Shown: one piece after another, positions 178 to 9,357 of the stretch
Layout: each line of letters starts with the position of its first letter
Position numbering within the stretch: the first letter of the stretch is position 1
Source of the DNA: Utricularia gibba
Lineage: Eukaryota > Plantae > Magnoliophyta
DNA length: 64,000 bases
Assembly (NCBI GenBank): GCA_002189035.1
Contig: NEEC01000009.1
Coordinates: forward strand, 868,001-932,000
Reading direction: 5' to 3'
Notes under the pieces: generated by a model
Seen by the model: the letters and a program-made list of their open reading frames with translations, nothing else
Database searches by the model: none
Told to the model about the DNA's origin: nothing
Translations under genes and position numbers: made by a program

Positions 178-858
178 ATGGCTACCGAGTCCGTTGAGAG
201 AAAACCCATGAAGCATTCGCAGCCGCCGGAGCCAGAGCATCTCCCCTGCCCCCGCTGCGATTCCACCAACACCAAGTTCTGTTACTACAACAACTATAAC
301 TTCTCGCAGCCACGCCATTTCTGCAAATCGTGCCGCCGGTACTGGACGCATGGGGGCACTCTCCGGGATATTCCGATTGGTGGGGGTAGCCGGAAAAACG
401 CGAAACGCTCGAGGAACGGGAGTGTTTCGTCTGTGTCTGCCTCTTCTTCTTCTTGCTCGTCGAGCGCCGCTGCCGTAGCCCATTTTGGGATCCCCGCCGA
501 GGTCGCGTCGCAGTTCATCGCGCCTTTCGCGGCGGATCACACGCCGTGTTTCCGGGATACCTTTACGTCTTTGCTGAATACCCAGGGCGCAGGGATGTGG
601 GCACTGGGTGGATTCGGTTTTGGGTCGAGGTTCGGGTTTGAAGATATGGGGTTTGGGCATGCGAGAGGTAGCTGGCCCATCACAGATGTTGCTGCGCCTG
701 CTGTTTTCACGACGACGTCTCCCGCCGGAGTAACTTCTGGGCCGTACACGTGGCAGGTGGAGGGCGGCGACGGTGCATTTTCAGGGGTAGGCGGTGACTG
801 TTTCACCCTCCCGGAACTGGCAATCTCGTCCACATACTGCGGAAGCGTGTGCAAGTGA
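178..858 (+). CDS. Dof zinc-finger transcription factor (intronless, 226 aa)
   Basis: Canonical Dof domain [50 protein letters not shown], followed by a Ser-rich linker. Confidence 0.95.
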
Positions 859-1520: not shown

Positions 1521-2072
1521 AGTAATATAAAGAAAAACAGCTCTCATTAATACCCTTTGGTGCTTACTCTAGTTTCAGTTAAATCACTTGAACTCCAGCT
1601 TCAGTACCCGCTATGTGTTCGCCGAAATCCCGCCGTGGGCGTATGCAATGGGAAATCACGATGACGAAGAGTGGGAATCAGGGGATGTTGTTGAGTGTGA
1701 TGATATGGGTTCATCTCGTTCTTTTACTACTTACTATCAACAGTTTCAGGTTCAAATTGGACACGCAGATGGTACAGATGACATGAGAGTGGCTGGGATT
1801 TGTCGTGTTTGAAGGAGTGGTTGAGATATTGCCTCACTTTTTTAGTGGGTATGGATAAATCCATGGAGATAAGTAGTGTTCATGTGATGGTGGAAGAAGA
1901 TCCAAAATCCGTGACTTTCAGAGAGAGGGAAGAGCGAACAACACCATTGGTTTTCATGGTTTGCACCAGAATAAGTGAGTGGTCTTCTTATGGGACAAAG
2001 CTCATGAATTTATTGCACGATCACCGGAATTGCACTGATGGGGATGACATCTGAAGATACATTGAAAGAGGG

Positions 2073-3017
2073 TCAAGCGTATTTGTCTGCGATCTCGGAC
2101 AAGGCCTTGGCGAGAGCATCAGGCTGAGTGAACATGGGCATATGGTCAGCACCTTTGATCTCTTTCACCTCCACCACCGGATAATTCTCGATCTGCCACC
2201 GCTGGAAATCCGCCGGGATCGTCTTGTCGTCGGCTGCAATAACGTAGACACGTGGGACGGACCCGTATTTCTCATCGGAGAAGTTGGGGAGAGTGGCCAG
2301 GTCCTCCAGGAATAGCGATCCCGGCCGCACGGACAAATGTCCCAGTGCTTGATCCTGTCCAATTTGCACGATCAGTAGTCTGTTCGCTTTGTTCAGTACT
2401 GATTGTAATGAAATGTGACAACCTCAGCGGGAGACAGATTGTATAGCGACTCAGAGATGAACTTGGGGCCGACGACCAGTGCGGTGATCGGAGGGTCTCC
2501 GTAGCTCGGAAATTGAGTGTCCAGCCATGCTTCCATCGGAGTCCTCTTCATATACTGTGAAGAACAGTCAAATGAAAGGCAGCAAGCTGATGAAGATGAA
2601 ATACAAGGGCCAAACAGAAAGTTCCAAGTAGTCAACATTTTAACTAAGTACCTCGTCAATGACAAACGACGGCCTATTCTTAGTATCAGGCATCAGGGCG
2701 TTGAGAAAAACGGCGACGGCGATCTTCTCCGGGTACTGCTCAATTGCATACGCCGCCGCGTAGCCTCCTCCACTATGCCCGATGAGAACCACTTTCTCTC
2801 CCTCCGGCACAGCAGCTAGTGCCTCCAGCAACGGCGTGGTGTAATCATGCAATGATCGAACCTCCTCCAATTTCTTCCCATTGTTACCCGCCGCCGCGAG
2901 GCTAATCGGCGAGAACCGGTAACCGGCGGCCTCCATTCGGGGCTTCAGCTTGTAGTACACCCAGGCCCCGTGGCCGACGCCGTGCACGGCGAGGAAATGC
3001 TTCGGTTCCCCCGCCAT
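2073..3017 (-). CDS. MES: Methylesterase (MES/SABP2/PNAE)-family alpha/beta-hydrolase, 259 aa, 3 exons; candidate iridoid cyclase-type
   Basis: Exons 3017-2652, 2554-2423 and 2354-2073 with GT-AG phase-0 introns of 97 and 68 nt. Motifs HFLAVHGVGHGAWVYYK, GHSGGG (nucleophile Ser), DDKTIP (Asp) and GADHMPM (His); the triad is intact. Confidence 0.93.
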
Positions 3018-3647
3018 AGTTGATCTGAACTGATTTAGTGAGGAATTGGGTGCGACTACATTCTCCCATGAAGCCCGAATTTATAACGGGAACGTCGAAC
3101 GTGAAACCAGAATATATTTTCCAATTTAAGCATCCTTTATTTATAAATATTGCAAGTTAAATATTCTTCGAAAATCTTCACGTGAGTTTATTAATAATAT
3201 AATTAATTACATTATATTATTTAAATCTTTTAAACCATATTTATTTATTATTTAATATAATTTAAATAATAATGTGACAAATAATTTTGGTCGTACAACA
3301 ACCCTAATTCCCCTCGAGGAGCACGAGACGAAGGAAATACTATTATTTTTTTGCTCCAAATAAATTAATAAAATAATATTTGAAAAAAAAAAGGTCTAAT
3401 GTTGTAATTGTGGCCATACACCCACTCCTCCGTTGTCCCTTCCGTTGCCACGATTATCGTTTGACCTAATTTCCGATAGACGGTGGCCACCGACTCCCCG
3501 TCTGTGAGGTAGTAGAGAAAAGACCAGAAAGGGATGCTGCCAAAATCTGCATTTTATAATAAGGCTCTCGCGTGCCACGAGTTTGAGTTTGTCTGGTATT
3601 TAAGATCACCGCCGGGGTGAACAGAGGGATCCCTATCCGACGCCGGT
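3018..3647. promoter_or_regulatory. 630-bp divergent (bidirectional) promoter shared by MES and CYP76B
   Basis: Head-to-head ATGs at 3017(-) and 3648(+). TATAAAT on minus at 3085-3079; AACGTG at 3098-3103; G-box CACGTG at 3179-3184; CACGAG at ~3323 and ~3577; TATTTAA on plus at ~3597; AT-rich core. Confidence 0.7.
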
Positions 3648-5207
3648 ATGGATTTCCTCACGGTTGTGCTCGGAATCCTCTTCGTTGTCACCCTTGTTCA
3701 CGCGCTCCAAGCGCTTCCCACTAGAGGGAAGAAGCTGCCTCCTGGGCCGACTCCTTTACCGCTGATAGGAAGCCTCCACCTGCTGGGAGATCAACCCCAT
3801 CAGTCTCTGGCGAGGCTGGCCAAGATCCATGGACCTTTGATGTGCATCCGTCTTGGATTCATCAACACGGTGGTGGCAACGTCGAATGAAATGGCCAGAG
3901 AGCTGCTGCAGAAGCAGGACTTGGTGTTTTCAAGTCGGACAGTACCGAATGCCATCCATGCGCACGACCAGTTTAAGTACTCCGTTGTGTGGTTACCGGT
4001 GGCGGCGCGGTGGAGAGGTCTCCGGAAGGCGTTGAACTCGAATATCTTTGCGGGGAGCCGGCTGGATGCGAATCAGCATCTTAGGGTGAGGAAGGTGCAG
4101 GAGCTGATTGCGTACTGTAAAAAGAGTAGTCAGAGCGGGACCCCGGTGGATGTCGGAAGAGCGGCGTTCCGGACGTCGTTGAATCTGCTTTCCAACACCA
4201 TCTTCTCCAAGGACTTGACGGACCCATTTTCCGATTCGGCCAAGGAGTTCAAGGAGCTGGTGTGGGGCGTCATGGTGGAAGCTGGGAAACCCAATCTTGT
4301 GGATTTTTTCCCCTTACTTGAAAAAGTTGACCCACAGGGAATCAGAAAGCGCATGACGCAGCATTTCTCCAAAATCATCGATCTTTTCCATGGATTGATC
4401 GATGAGAGGATGAAGAAGAAAGCCCAGAGTGATGAGGATTTTGGCGATGTCATCGACGGCTTGCTTGCGGTCAGTAAAGAAAGCCCTGATGAAATGGATC
4501 GGACTCACATAGAGCGCATGTGTCTGGTAAAGGAAAATGAATTCTCACAGAAGTTGGGGTACGAATTTAGTCGAATACCTGATGAGCGTCGTTTCCTGCA
4601 GGATCTGTTCGTCGCCGGGACCGACACAACCTCGAGCACGCTCGAGTGGGCGATGGCGGAGATGCTCAAGAATCCTGAAGCAATGAAGAAAGCGAAGGAA
4701 GAGCTCGCGAATGTCATCGGAAAAGGGAAAGCCCTCGAGGAAGCAGACATCCCGCGACTACCTTACATCCGGAGCATCATCAAGGAGACTCTCCGTATCC
4801 ATCCGCCGGTGCCGTTCTTGATCCCCCGCCGCGTGGAACAGGACGTGGAAGTCTCCGGCTACACTGTACCTAAAGACTCGCAAGTGTTCGTGAACGTGTG
4901 GGCAATCGGGAGAGACCCCACTATCTGGCCAAATCCGCTGGAATTCAAACCGGAAAGGTTTCTCGAATCCGCGATCGACATGCGCGGCCGCGACTTCGAG
5001 CTGATCCCGTTCGGCGCGGGCCGGAGAATCTGCCCAGGGTTGCCGCTTGCGATCAGAATGGTGCCGGTGATGTTGGGCTCCCTGCTGAACTCGTTCGACT
5101 GGAAACTAGAAAACGGAATGACGAGTAATGATTTAGATATGGAGGAGAAGTTCGGAATCACCCTGCAGAAAGCTCACCCTCTCCGCGCCATTCCCATCCC
5201 CCTGTAA
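3648..5207 (+). CDS. G8H: Cytochrome P450 CYP76B, geraniol 8-hydroxylase (G8H/G10H)-like, 494 aa after removing one intron
   Basis: Exons 3648-4526 and 4602-5207 with a 75-nt GT-AG intron. PPGP hinge, I-helix DLFVAGTDTTS, ETLR, KPERF and heme motif PFGAGRRICPG. Long stretches recalled as nearly identical to Catharanthus CYP76B6 (LHLLGDQPH, RLDANQHLR..KVQELIAYC, DVGRAAFRTSLNLLSN, MVEAGKPNLVDFFPLLEKVDPQGIR, HIERMCLDLF, MEEKFGITLQKAHPLRA). Confidence 0.92.
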   Translation: MDFLTVVLGILFVVTLVHALQALPTRGKKLPPGPTPLPLIGSLHLLGDQPHQSLARLAKIHGPLMCIRLGFINTVVATSNEMARELLQKQDLVFSSRTVPNAIHAHDQFKYSVVWLPVAARWRGLRKALNSNIFAGSRLDANQHLRVRKVQELIAYCKKSSQSGTPVDVGRAAFRTSLNLLSNTIFSKDLTDPFSDSAKEFKELVWGVMVEAGKPNLVDFFPLLEKVDPQGIRKRMTQHFSKIIDLFHGLIDERMKKKAQSDEDFGDVIDGLLAVSKESPDEMDRTHIERMCLVKENEFSQKLGYEFSRIPDERRFLQDLFVAGTDTTSSTLEWAMAEMLKNPEAMKKAKEELANVIGKGKALEEADIPRLPYIRSIIKETLRIHPPVPFLIPRRVEQDVEVSGYTVPKDSQVFVNVWAIGRDPTIWPNPLEFKPERFLESAIDMRGRDFELIPFGAGRRICPGLPLAIRMVPVMLGSLLNSFDWKLENGMTSNDLDMEEKFGITLQKAHPLRAIPIPL

Positions 5208-5263
5208 CCGCCATACCCAAAGAAATAAACACACGCAGCACAACGTGAATTCCCGGCCCCCAG

Positions 5264-5376
5264 CATCTGCGTTATGCTTCACGTTGTTGAACTGCTTGCT
5301 TCATGAATGGGAGTTTCCGCTTACTTTTTCAATCACGCGACCTTATCGCAGCACAACGTGAAGCATAACGCCGATG
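5264..5376. repeat. Inverted repeat / hairpin downstream of G8H
   Basis: 19-bp perfect arms 5269-5287 (GCGTTATGCTTCACGTTGT) and 5353-5371 (ACAACGTGAAGCATAACGC), extended by CATC/GATG; partial third copy at 5235-5249. Confidence 0.8.
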
Positions 5377-5558
5377 AATGTGCCAAAGGAAACATGATCG
5401 GAAAAACTACGTCACCGTTTTAAGGATGGTGTACGGAGGAAAAAGGCAACCAGTGAAAAATCAATTCTGGTATCACAGTTTACAAAATCGCAAGGTTATC
5501 CCATTTGAGAGACAACCATGAAGAAACCACTGTATCTCTTTAAGGTCAGATGATCGGT

Positions 5559-7844
5559 CTATGGATGATTCCGTCCCGCAGCTTTTCCGCAGAGAAGCAC
5601 ATTCGTCGGAATATCGTATTCGTTGGCAAGACTGGGCGTCGGATTGTAGACCCTGAGGTAGAGCTCTTGCCCCAGGTATCGTCTTCCCCACATTGCTGAT
5701 CTTAAATTCCACATGCCCTGATTGTCTAGAGAGACCAGGATCGTGGTCCATGAATTGGGGTATACCTGCAGAGCAAGATGAAAGTGGCGTGGGTGAATCA
5801 TTCATTCACTGTCTGAAACTGATCAGCGGTTGCAGAAGGTTAGAAGCTCAAGAGTTACCTGAGCGGTATGCCTTGTCAATGCATCAACAAGATTGTAAGA
5901 CTTTCTGCTGTCTGTTGTCCACTGCCCTGCTCCGTATCTGCTCAACAAGCAGGAACCAGATTAGCGCACATTGGCAGGATTTTGGAAGAGAGAAAGGAGA
6001 TGATGATGTAATCGTGGCTCCTACCCGACAACCCAGAAATCGTAGCCATCAAGATGCCATGACTGAACGCTGTCCTCGTTGTTCTGGAAGACAACTTCAA
6101 GAAACTCATGAAGAGAAGCCCCAAGGACAGATGTGCCAAAGCCTGCACCATTTCCATTGGGAGAACTCTGGATGGAGTTTACACTAAAAACACCAGGAAT
6201 GTTGAAGTAGTCTGCGAGCTTTAATGGAGTATCCGGATTGATATATGAGATCCCATTAACTGCATATCTCTGCTTGCCACCAAGGACAGGTGCTGAGTTC
6301 GCCAGCACAATGGTCCTCGATGGTGTTATTGTTCCGTAATGGAACGAGCCCTGTGGATTCGGCCTTGCAGCATTTGAGGTAAGATTCCATCTGAGATGCA
6401 ACCAGACATAAACTTAGAAGAACCCCATGTCTGAAAACTGAGGATGCATGAGCATCACGGGAGCTAGATAAGAACCTCCATCTAGTTCATACCTGAGGGA
6501 TCTGGCTTGGTCGATTGACCAATCAATTTCCGTTGTCGGACCGGCGGGAGAGGACCAGACACAGGAACCGTTGATTGGGAGTAGTGCAGGATTCCAGAAC
6601 CAGAGAGGACGGTAGGGGTGAACCTTGAGGATGCAACAATGTAGTAGTCGCGAGCAGGCTGATCCATGGTGACTAAAATTGTTGCAGTTTGGCCAACATG
6701 AATATCTAGAGAATCATAGACATTCTGGAGAACATTAGATCCTTCCACCTCAACGAGCTTCAGTTTATGCCCCTGAATTCTGAAGTTGAACGATGTGGAC
6801 AAGCCGACATTCGAAACCCTGAACATGTAAGTTCTCCCTGCAAAACCATGACAAGATTTGAGCATGAGGCCAAGAAATAAAAGAAAATCTGGAACTGGAA
6901 TTTGTTCAATGCAGCAAAAACGCATGTGTTGTAAGAAACACAGAACCTTGATTACAAGTGAACGTAGACCCCCGTTGGCCGTTGATAAGAATTCCATCAG
7001 GGAAGGGCAGTGGGCGCCCTGAATCCAAAGCTTGCTGCAACATCTGTCAGAGCAAATATGCATGATCACCCATCAAGCTTTTCTGCAAGTTTTCATCACA
7101 AGGTGCAACTAGCAAGTTGTTACCTTATGAGTAGAACTGTGCCAATCACCAATGAGCAAGCTAAAGTCTCCATCAGGCTTCGCGTACGGAACCGGAATGA
7201 CAGACCGTGCATAGATATTCAGAGCTCCAAAACCTCCAGCTGCTCTATGCATCTGAGTTGATGGGAAGTATGTGTAGCTCCCAATTTGATCCTTTGTTTG
7301 GAACTTATACGTGTAGTTTGAATTTGGTGGTACAGGACAGTTAGTTCCCAAAACACCATCTTGCCAGCTATTTTTCCTCTGCTTGATTCCATTCCTATCA
7401 TAGAACACAAATACAAATAAAAACAACTATTGGAGACATGACAGCAGCAATTTCAGACAAAGATCCTGTCTTTCCTCAAACAGCTTGAATCCAAATGTGT
7501 GGAAAATCGACTCACCAAGTTAAAAGAAAAGGCTGGTCTAATTTGTTCACTAAATTGAGAATTATGTTGTCATTGGTTACAGTATCAAGAGTAGGACCAG
7601 GGAACCGCCCGTTGATAAGAATGACCTGCAGATGATCCAACAACCAAACACTTTTCAGTACAAAAACTACTGAAAACACACAAAATAACTGAACATTGCA
7701 AACCTGCTGAGGAGTACCGAGTGGATAAGCAAATCCGTAGGTTACTGTCCAAGTATAGTACTTGTAAGCATCTTCAGCTCGGGCATCAGGGATACCCCAG
7801 AGAGCTAGAAGCGTGAGGAAAGACAGCAGCGTCCCCTGCTTCAT
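5559..7844 (-). CDS. SKU5-similar (SKS) L-ascorbate oxidase homolog, multi-exon; apparent 1-bp frameshift near 6546
   Basis: Signal peptide + AEDAYKYYTWTVTYG, ILINGRFPGP, NGIKQRKNSWQDGV.GTNCP, KDQIGSYTYFPS, FRVSNVGLSTSFNFRIQGH, RPNPQGSFHYG, WHLDGYDFWVVG, SLDNQGMWNLRS, NVLLCGKA*. Confidence 0.9.
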
Positions 7845-9357
7845 TTTCTGCAAGATTTCAACTTTATTCAGTAATCGAACTGTGGAACAGATTTAGGAAA
7901 ATGGGAGTTGCAAGCAAACATTTTTAAGCTACTGACAGATCTGATGAGGAGCACACACCCAGATCTGAACCGGCCGTCTATTAGCCAAGGAGACGGGAAC
8001 CCAATGAGGAACTAATGCTCAACCACAAAGGCAAGAAAATGGTGAGAACGCGGACAAGCGTGTTGCTTCAACACAGCTTGCATTAAATAGACAGGGATTC
8101 CCACTGCCCAATAGTGGTGGCCAAAAACTTCAACTAATTTAGCAAAGCAGCACAAGAAAGAAAAGACGAAAAAGAAAAGCAATTCTTTGAATACACTCCG
8201 CCGCTTCACTGATCCACGCGTTTCCGCGTTGCCTTGAACTTAATGGCTACACTTTTCGCACCGCTAGTCTCCTTCACTGTCGCCATGCCCGGTTCCTACT
8301 ACACTTATTTTAGAACACGAGACCCCACAGAATGGAACAACCGCTCACAGCTAAAAAAAACATTGTAGGACAAAATTATCAAAGCATGTAATAGTATCCT
8401 CGCAATTCATCTTCATTGGGATCCAAAGATTGCTCCTTTTAATCATGTTGTCTCTTTTCTCCACAAAACTTCATCAGACTAACTGCCCTATACACTCAAT
8501 GGATCTAACCCAAGTCAGAAAAAATGGTAACAGTTGGTAATGATGCAAACTCCATGATCGGAATCAGTCCTACACTAACACACTAGAGCTGCTCATTAAC
8601 TTCCCAATTCCCCAACTCTCCAGAAATAAATGAATCCCACCATAACGAAAATCAGTGTTGTAAAGATGAGTTTGAAAAAATACTATGTTATTTTTAAAAT
8701 ATTTGAAAAAAAATAAAAATTATTACATATATATATTGAATGTATTATTTGATTTATGTATAGATTTATTTTAATAAAAAGATGCCGCGTGAACGAATTA
8801 TTCGTCGCCAGCTGGGGATACGTGGTCCCACTTTTTGTTATTTTCTTTATGGATTTTTTTTCTTCCATATTTACGTTTCTGTAAATTGGGGTTTTTGATG
8901 CCTTCGAAGGCCGGGAAATTGGATCACCTGAACTCCATGGCGTGGGAGAGCGTTTTTCCTTAGGAATGGGGCGGGAGAGAGTGGCAAACGGTCAGGTGGT
9001 CGGAGAAACGGCTAACTTGGGATATGATGATTTCCCGATAGTTCAACTGGAAATGCCAATTATGGAGTGGACTAGGCTTTCCTGTAATTCAGGTGCGCCG
9101 GAATATGTTTTTGTGCTTATTTGATTTGAGGGTTGGATGCTAAAAATAGAAAGTCAAAGCGAAGCTTCCTTCCCTGGGTAGGAATGGAGGGAAAAGGTGT
9201 CTTGGAGGGAGTGTTATCAGAATTCGTCGGCCGTATTTTCCGGTGACAACCGGGCTCCGGCCGTCGGGGTTCTCTTTCTCCGTTCGCCATGTCTTTATTG
9301 AATCTATACTCTTGAATGGAAACAAAGATCACAGCTTGGTGGGGGTGTATGTAAACC

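Follow-up and report, generated by a model that had tools for sequence, protein, structure and literature searches.

The iridoid cyclase (ICYC) has recently been described as a MES-type hydrolase (Colinas et al. 2025, Nat Plants, PMC12626888). Seven orthologues were assayed in that study (CiICYC, CrICYC, AmICYC, SiICYC, LjICYC, VcICYC and AsICYC), and ICYC was reported to adjoin the gene for geraniol 8-hydroxylase (G8H) in each of the asterid orders that produce iridoids and have a genome available; the main text is silent on the orientation of the two genes. The mutated residues of CiICYC include the catalytic triad (S83, D210 and H238) and the ICYC-conserved pocket residues V15, H17, G84 and W133. 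The His and Asp of the triad were required for cyclisation, and the Val and Trp were found to shape the pocket. Here, we analyzed a 64-kb stretch of Utricularia gibba DNA (contig NEEC01000009.1, positions 868,001 to 932,000; hereafter the window), in which a MES-type alpha/beta-hydrolase gene (2073-3017, minus strand) and a CYP76B cytochrome P450 gene (3648-5207, plus strand) are located head-to-head, separated by an ATG-to-ATG spacer of 630 bp (3018-3647). An earlier note on this DNA had proposed that the pair is a co-regulated mini-cluster of the early iridoid pathway, and the coordinates, the divergent arrangement and the 630-bp distance that it gave were all exact.

We conclude that the locus is very probably the compact-genome orthologue of the conserved asterid ICYC-G8H mini-cluster, in which the P450 and the hydrolase would have the roles of G8H and cyclase, respectively. 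The G8H (CYP76B) would hydroxylate geraniol at C8 in the first committed iridoid step, 8HGO and iridoid synthase (ISY), both encoded elsewhere, would act in between, and ICYC would take the reactive 8-oxocitronellyl enol from ISY and close it to nepetalactol, with the 7R-cis-cis isomer as the expected product in a Lamiales plant of route II. This reading is right yet already known: the mini-cluster, consisting of the same two adjacent genes (Fig. 1d of PMC12626888), was published in October 2025, and the cyclase function of MES-family proteins, mentioned in the earlier note, is the one described by Colinas et al. What is added here is small, namely the extreme compaction of the spacer, the divergent orientation from Cornales to Lamiales and the bHLH-type G-/N-boxes in both proximal promoters.

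Homology and phylogeny of the two proteins

The coding sequence of the hydrolase gene runs from 3017 to 2073 in three exons, and the spliced product of 259 aa agrees in fold and length with the MES-type alpha/beta hydrolases of about 260 aa. The open reading frame (ORF) of exon 1, which starts at 3017 and encodes the N-terminal 122 residues, was used alone as the homology query. It matched the structures of SABP2, polyneuridine aldehyde esterase (PNAE) and hydroxynitrile lyase at 1e-33 to 1e-38, and the Pfam profiles Abhydrolase_1 and Abhydrolase_6 matched exons 1 and 3. A HMMER search with exon 1 against 1.84 billion representatives identified a few close fragments (92%, 86% and 77% identity), followed by a 259-aa Rhododendron protein (59%) and then by ordinary MES proteins at approximately 50%. 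Named homologues were gathered with a full-length Rhododendron relative. The spliced window protein was most similar to a Buddleja protein (82.7% identity), followed by Forsythia KAL2552085 (72%), an Olea protein (69.5%), Catharanthus roseus Protein S (67.7%), a gentian W14/15-type protein (67%) and a Lonicera protein (64.6%). Protein S (P0278) differs at only 2 of 258 residues from the assayed CrICYC, to which the window protein is likewise 67.7% identical.

A maximum-likelihood tree of 66 proteins, inferred under LG+C20 with 1000 ultrafast bootstraps and the Shimodaira-Hasegawa-like approximate likelihood ratio test (SH-aLRT), placed the window MES inside a 13-member ICYC clade with support values of 100/100, as the sister of the Buddleja protein. 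The clade includes C. roseus Protein S and proteins named as orthologues in the PMC12626888 supplement, and its branching order tracks the species tree, from Ericales/Cornales through Escallonia/Lonicera, Catharanthus/Gentiana and Oleaceae to Buddleja and the window protein. Lamiales SABP2-like proteins, Oleaceae 'methylesterase 1' and PNAE all fall outside this clade and are well separated from it, so the phylogenetic check suggested by the earlier note came out in favor of the cyclase. The resemblance to the gentian W14/15 esterase, which the earlier note had pointed out, was borne out as well: the W14/15-type protein (P0284) is located within the ICYC clade, and the supplement lists Gentiana triflora BAF58164 as an ICYC orthologue next to ICYC-type sequences from Forsythia, Olea, Cornus and Nyssa and a Pinguicula caudata transcript. 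The motifs of the window MES match those of the Lamiales and Pinguicula orthologues in the supplement, and the word ATLPNFSDEK is common to the window MES and the Pinguicula caudata ICYC and to no other sequence in the parts of the table compared. Together with the tiny introns and the dense packing of genes, this word points to Lentibulariaceae as the probable family.

The residues that were studied in CiICYC are all present at corresponding positions. V14, H16, S82, G83, W132, D209 and H237 of the window MES are the counterparts of V15, H17, S83, G84, W133, D210 and H238, such that both the triad and the ICYC pocket are complete, and the spacing is identical in the two proteins, with 68, 50, 77 and 28 residues between successive landmarks. 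Alignment columns were regarded as ICYC-separating if one state occurred in at least 11 of 12 ICYC rows and in no more than 15% of 52 other MES proteins. Four such columns were identified: V20 (mostly C in the others), F35 (V), G83 (L/F/Y) and A88 (L/I). The window MES has the ICYC state at all four. The glycine at position 83 was observed in each of the 12 ICYC-clade proteins and in none of the 52 others, of which 47 have Leu or Phe in this column.

The earlier note had pointed to departures from SABP2-type esterases in motifs near the active site. The window MES indeed has HGVGHGAWVYYK, GHSGGG and FLNALMP, and the contrasting motifs HGACHGGWSWYK, GHSLGG and FLAAFMP are those of tobacco SABP2 in the supplementary table of PMC12626888. 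Since the window protein shares the ICYC state at all four separating columns, these differences are, at the sequence level, real clade markers. SABP2, AtMES and PNAE resemble the window MES in fold, in the Ser-Asp-His triad and at about 50-55% identity, but belong to a separate clade and carry GHSLGG, AWCWYK and FLxAFMP where the window protein has GHSGGG, AWVYYK and FLNALMP; the motifs GHSLGG and HGACHG(A/G)W(C/S)WYK of the SABP2/AtMES clade are absent from it. Thus, the fully supported clade (100/100), the residues diagnostic of ICYC and the conserved synteny with G8H described below support the assignment of the window MES as an orthologue of the characterised iridoid cyclases, with which it shares fold, length, triad, pocket counterparts, monophyletic clade and G8H-adjacent position. 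The window protein differs from its assayed relatives by a longer terminal branch, and its cyclase function is predicted.

The P450 coding sequence consists of two exons that encode a spliced protein of 494 aa. The Pfam p450 profile matched both exons, and the AGTDTT, ExxR and PERF motifs as well as the Cys haem ligand are intact. The best full-length matches were Lamiales geraniol 8-/10-hydroxylases, with 80-82% identity to G8H from Handroanthus, Rehmannia, Sesamum, Striga and Phlomoides, and 77% to Swertia CYP76B10. In a tree of 52 proteins, the window protein was placed within the core-Lamiales G8H clade (SH-aLRT 99), which is the sister of the Oleaceae G8H in a topology that tracks the species tree. 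The claim that the CYP76B closely resembles geraniol 8-hydroxylase was therefore upheld, and the sequence evidence supports its identification as a G8H orthologue. The P450 motifs, the single-intron structure and the length of 494 aa are common to CYP76B6-type G8H, such as Swertia mussotii CYP76B10 and the Lamiales G8Hs. In contrast to these, the window G8H has an intron of only 75 nt that is in frame and free of stop codons, which explains why the raw ORF amounts to 519 aa. For both window proteins, we infer the enzymatic activity by analogy with characterised relatives.

As a side observation, naive ORF calling of the G8H gene yields a 519-aa protein with a spurious insert of 25 aa immediately before the I-helix.

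Conservation and expression of the gene pair

The DNA around G8H or ICYC of other genomes was searched with both window proteins. The two genes were found to be divergently transcribed in Sesamum radiatum, Forsythia ovata, Handroanthus impetiginosus and Nyssa sinensis (Cornales), with ATG-to-ATG distances of 4.9 kb, 5.9 kb, 7.8 kb and 27.8 kb, respectively, as compared to 0.63 kb in the window. The Nyssa distance was obtained by combining the recorded positions of both loci, which have adjacent locus tags (F0562_003896 and F0562_003897); a search of the 10-kb flanks alone showed no partner. The head-to-head ICYC-G8H pair is thus conserved from Cornales to Lamiales, which provides evidence from sequence comparison for an ancestral divergent orientation. 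Its recurrence in four other asterids shows that the adjacency of the MES and CYP genes in the window is not due to chance.

Several genomes were also seen to carry genes for SABP2-type or more distant MES proteins near G8H or ICYC. Among these genes are Buddleja MES 0117700 near ICYC 0117900, Erythranthe MES 08G045000-045200 near the G8H-like gene 08G045300, Phlomoides MES 030468 near G8H 030463, Centaurea MES 000030 near CYP76B 000026, and a third MES gene downstream of the Sesamum G8H (L006:14221-16166). This neighbourhood suggests that a tandem duplication gave rise to ICYC within a MES array already located beside a CYP76B gene. Forsythia ovata has two G8H copies approximately 1 Mb apart on one chromosome (L008:1283-4071 and L009:3001-6260), the proximal promoters of which are identical over 130 nt before the ATG; only one of the copies is head-to-head with ICYC.

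Public RNA runs of the source organism contain approximately 70% of the sampled words from 2073-5207, which corresponds roughly to the exonic fraction of this segment. Contigs of four public RNA runs were placed on 1800-5500, where they omit exactly the three segments 2355-2422, 2555-2651 and 4527-4601. The MES mRNA extends from about 1889 to 3053, and the CYP mRNA has its 5' end at 3633-3635 in two runs and at 3571 in one, with a 3' end at about 5320-5332. No contig from the four runs covered approximately 3054-3570. Since the contigs cover both genes and skip exactly the three introns, both MES and CYP are transcribed and correctly spliced, and in the same libraries. In one run (X8), two contig variants of MES exon 1 (2691-2994) were observed, with 6-7 differences per approximately 150 nt; these may be allelic, or may come from a second accession or from a close paralogue outside the window.

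The dN values relative to Lamiales orthologues were 0.09-0.14 for both genes. Synonymous sites were saturated, for which reason dN is given alone and not as a dN/dS ratio, and the values are consistent with strong purifying selection on both genes. The miniature genome of this Lamiales plant has thus kept the pair intact, expressed and, by all appearances, under purifying selection, which supports the published view that ICYC-G8H is an ancestral core unit of asterid iridoid biosynthesis. With approximately 3.4 kb for both transcription units and their promoters, and 630 bp between the genes as compared to 5-28 kb in the other genomes examined, it represents the cluster in its most compact natural form, of a size handy for promoter dissection and pathway engineering. 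The locus adds no new enzyme class and no new pathway logic.

Alternative roles of the hydrolase and of the pair

The first alternative is that the window MES hydrolyses iridoid or secoiridoid methyl esters, as olive methylesterases do with oleoside-type esters; this had been the alternative offered in the earlier note. Olive MES-family secoiridoid methylesterases do exist (Volk et al. 2019, as cited in PMC13084073), and 4-nitrophenyl acetate is still hydrolysed by ICYC orthologues (PMC12626888). However, Oleaceae 'methylesterase 1' is located in the SABP2-like lamiid clade together with the Lamiales SABP2-like proteins and not with the window MES. Likewise, the olive MES MK236352 has HGACHG and GHSLGG, and the ICYC-type protein of olive is encoded by a different gene, according to the PMC12626888 table. 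The assayed members of the clade to which the window MES belongs are cyclases. We therefore consider methyl-ester hydrolysis as the main role to be very unlikely.

The second alternative is an ordinary hormone-ester esterase of the SABP2/AtMES type, acting on methyl salicylate, methyl jasmonate or methyl indole-3-acetate, that came to lie beside a CYP76B gene by chance. The intact catalytic triad and oxyanion motif, the strong PDB matches to SABP2 and PNAE, the many divergent gene pairs in this compact window and the SABP2-type MES genes near CYP76B genes in other species would all agree with such a protein. Yet the ICYC clade (100/100) stands apart from all Lamiales SABP2-like proteins, position 83 is Gly rather than the Leu/Phe of most other MES and is accompanied by Val20, Phe35 and Ala88, and the gene has stayed paired with G8H from Cornales to Lamiales, all of which makes this explanation highly improbable.

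Finally, the pair could be a relic with another role, or in decay, in a lineage that has lost iridoid synthesis, as might be suspected from the strongly reduced genome, the long terminal branch of the MES (0.21, as compared to 0.07 for Buddleja) and the loss of iridoids in some Lamiales lineages, but we give this very little credence in view of two intact reading frames with every catalytic motif present, correctly spliced transcripts of both genes, low dN with saturated dS, conserved proximal promoter elements and the coding of Lentibulariaceae as route-II iridoid plants (PMC2992528).

A few observations weigh against the assignment as a functional ICYC-G8H mini-cluster. The partner gene was not found within the 10-kb flanks of the Buddleja ICYC or the Penstemon G8H, so tight linkage of the two genes is not universal; the microsynteny that the earlier note proposed to examine across asterids was recovered in Sesamum, Forsythia, Handroanthus and Nyssa and not, within 10 kb, in these two. 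Contig depth is a poor measure of expression, and presence in the same libraries is not quantified co-expression. The iridoid content of the plant is deduced from a family-level character coding for Lentibulariaceae. Moreover, because ICYC orthologues still act as esterases on a model substrate, the window MES may by analogy have a second, hydrolytic role. As for the earlier proposal of a co-regulated cluster, the conserved cluster was confirmed, and for co-regulation the agreement is partial, consisting of the shared RNA libraries and of bHLH-type boxes in both promoters. We infer co-regulation of ICYC and G8H from these two features.

Intergenic region, feature coordinates and neighbourhood

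The intergenic region (3018-3647) has a G+C content of 36% and contains a TATA box and G-/N-box-like elements on the side of each gene (Table 1). Approximately 520 bp are untranscribed, and approximately 580 bp separate the inferred transcription starts. Given so short a distance between the starts and between the ATGs, the two proximal promoters would abut.

Table 1. Features of the ICYC-G8H locus in the window (positions relative to the first nucleotide of the 64-kb stretch).
Feature	Position	Strand	Description
ICYC exon 3, stop included	2073..2354	-	93 aa; from sequence, RNA-confirmed junction and Pfam Abhydrolase_6; catalytic Asp209 (AADDKTIP) and His237 (GADHMPMF)
ICYC intron 2	2355..2422	-	68 nt, GT..AG, read from the strand sequence; absent from contigs of 4/4 runs
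ICYC exon 2	2423..2554	-	44 aa; contains Trp132, counterpart of CiICYC W133
ICYC intron 1	2555..2651	-	97 nt, GT..AG, read from the strand sequence; absent from contigs of 4/4 runs
ICYC exon 1	2652..3017	-	122 aa; HGVGHG (Val14, His16), AWVYYK (Val20), GHSGGG (Ser82, Gly83)
ICYC 5' untranslated region	3018..3053	-	run X4 contig extends to 3053; TATA box located ~30 nt upstream
ICYC TATA box TTATAAAT	3079..3086	-	TATAAA core invariant in five aligned Lamiales ICYC upstream regions
T/G-box-like AACGTG/CACGTT	3098..3103	.	12 nt upstream of the ICYC TATA box
Palindromic G-box CACGTG	3179..3184	.	~95 nt upstream of the ICYC TATA box
N-box CACGAG	3322..3327	+	mid-intergenic
G8H proximal element CTCGCG-N3-CACGAG	3567..3581	+	N-box at 3576-3581; ~15 nt upstream of the G8H TATA box
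G8H TATA box TATTTAAG	3597..3604	+	contigs of two runs start at 3633-3635
G8H (CYP76B) exon 1	3648..4526	+	293 aa; from sequence, homology, Pfam and RNA contigs
G8H intron	4527..4601	+	75 nt, GT..AG; skipped by RNA contigs of three runs
G8H exon 2	4602..5207	+	201 aa + stop; AGTDTT, ETLR, PERF, haem-binding FGAGRRICPG

The G8H upstream region of the window was aligned with those of Sesamum, Handroanthus, Penstemon, Forsythia and Nyssa (alignment A1). The block CTCGCG-N3-CACGAG, followed by a TATA box approximately 15-25 nt further on, aligned in the window, Sesamum, Handroanthus and Penstemon, and variants of the block were identified in Forsythia and, more loosely, in Nyssa; the remainder of the compared promoters has diverged. 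On the ICYC side, the leader is partly conserved with other Lamiales ICYC genes (alignment A3), and in Sesamum, Handroanthus, Forsythia and Buddleja the ICYC TATA box is preceded, at a distance of approximately 105-155 nt, by one or two N-boxes. In Sesamum, the CACGTT element is found immediately downstream of these N-boxes and far upstream of the TATA box. Exact k-mer footprinting of the intergenic region yielded only AT-rich words in common with the upstream regions of Handroanthus, Sesamum, Penstemon, Nyssa and Buddleja, and the conserved modules emerged only when the comparison was anchored on the G-/N-boxes and TATA boxes.

In C. roseus, the clade-IVa bHLH proteins BIS1-3 activate iridoid promoters, partly via G-/N-boxes (PMC7833464). 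We hypothesize that the two proximal promoters abut in the window and that both are read by the same class of regulator. Genome shrinkage would have removed all of the ICYC-G8H spacer except for two proximal modules, CTCGCG-N3-N-box-TATA for G8H and G-box, T/G-box and TATA box for ICYC, so that the untranscribed spacer of approximately 520 bp would consist of just the two proximal promoters, each with a G-/N-box for BIS-type clade-IVa bHLHs. The divergent orientation and the boxes could then go back to early asterids, when the pathway first arose. If this is true, no cis-regulatory unit smaller than this spacer would be known to suffice for expressing two iridoid genes in concert in a specialised cell type.

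This regulatory model, a back-to-back minimal promoter pair of which both modules are read by BIS-type regulators, is tentative and on balance doubtful. Three G-/N-boxes in 630 bp compare to 0.2 expected from shuffles (P ~0.001), and 1.3% of 630-bp tiles of the window reach this number, but the boxes are short and the enrichment test was picked post hoc, after inspection of the sequence. The window ICYC promoter has a G-box where its relatives carry N-boxes, and the C. roseus G8H promoter is reported to have no N-box (PMC7833464).

With regard to the N-terminus of ICYC, many Lamiales transcripts in the PMC12626888 table use an upstream in-frame ATG, which adds an extension of approximately 25 aa (MITIKLPLH...FRTKM), and the closest fragment (P0121) likewise begins at an upstream in-frame ATG. 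The leader of the window ICYC (3018-3090, minus strand) is homologous (...NQFRSTM). Unlike these transcripts, the window ICYC has no such extension, since the leader contains a TAA at 3083-3081 and no upstream ATG, and the mRNA has its 5' end near 3053.

The pair is flanked by genes for a Dof zinc-finger transcription factor (178-858, plus strand) and a multicopper oxidase (approximately 5470-7853, minus strand), and there was no sign that either of these two genes is a member of the iridoid module. PPR proteins, kinases, an NF-YB and an ABC transporter are among the products of the larger ORFs in the 64-kb window, and neither a further MES or CYP76 copy nor any other recognisable gene of the iridoid pathway was found among these ORFs. 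The interval that separates the Dof gene from the 3' end of the ICYC transcript contains a 73-bp tandem repeat (1248-1462; 2.8 copies, 75% matches).

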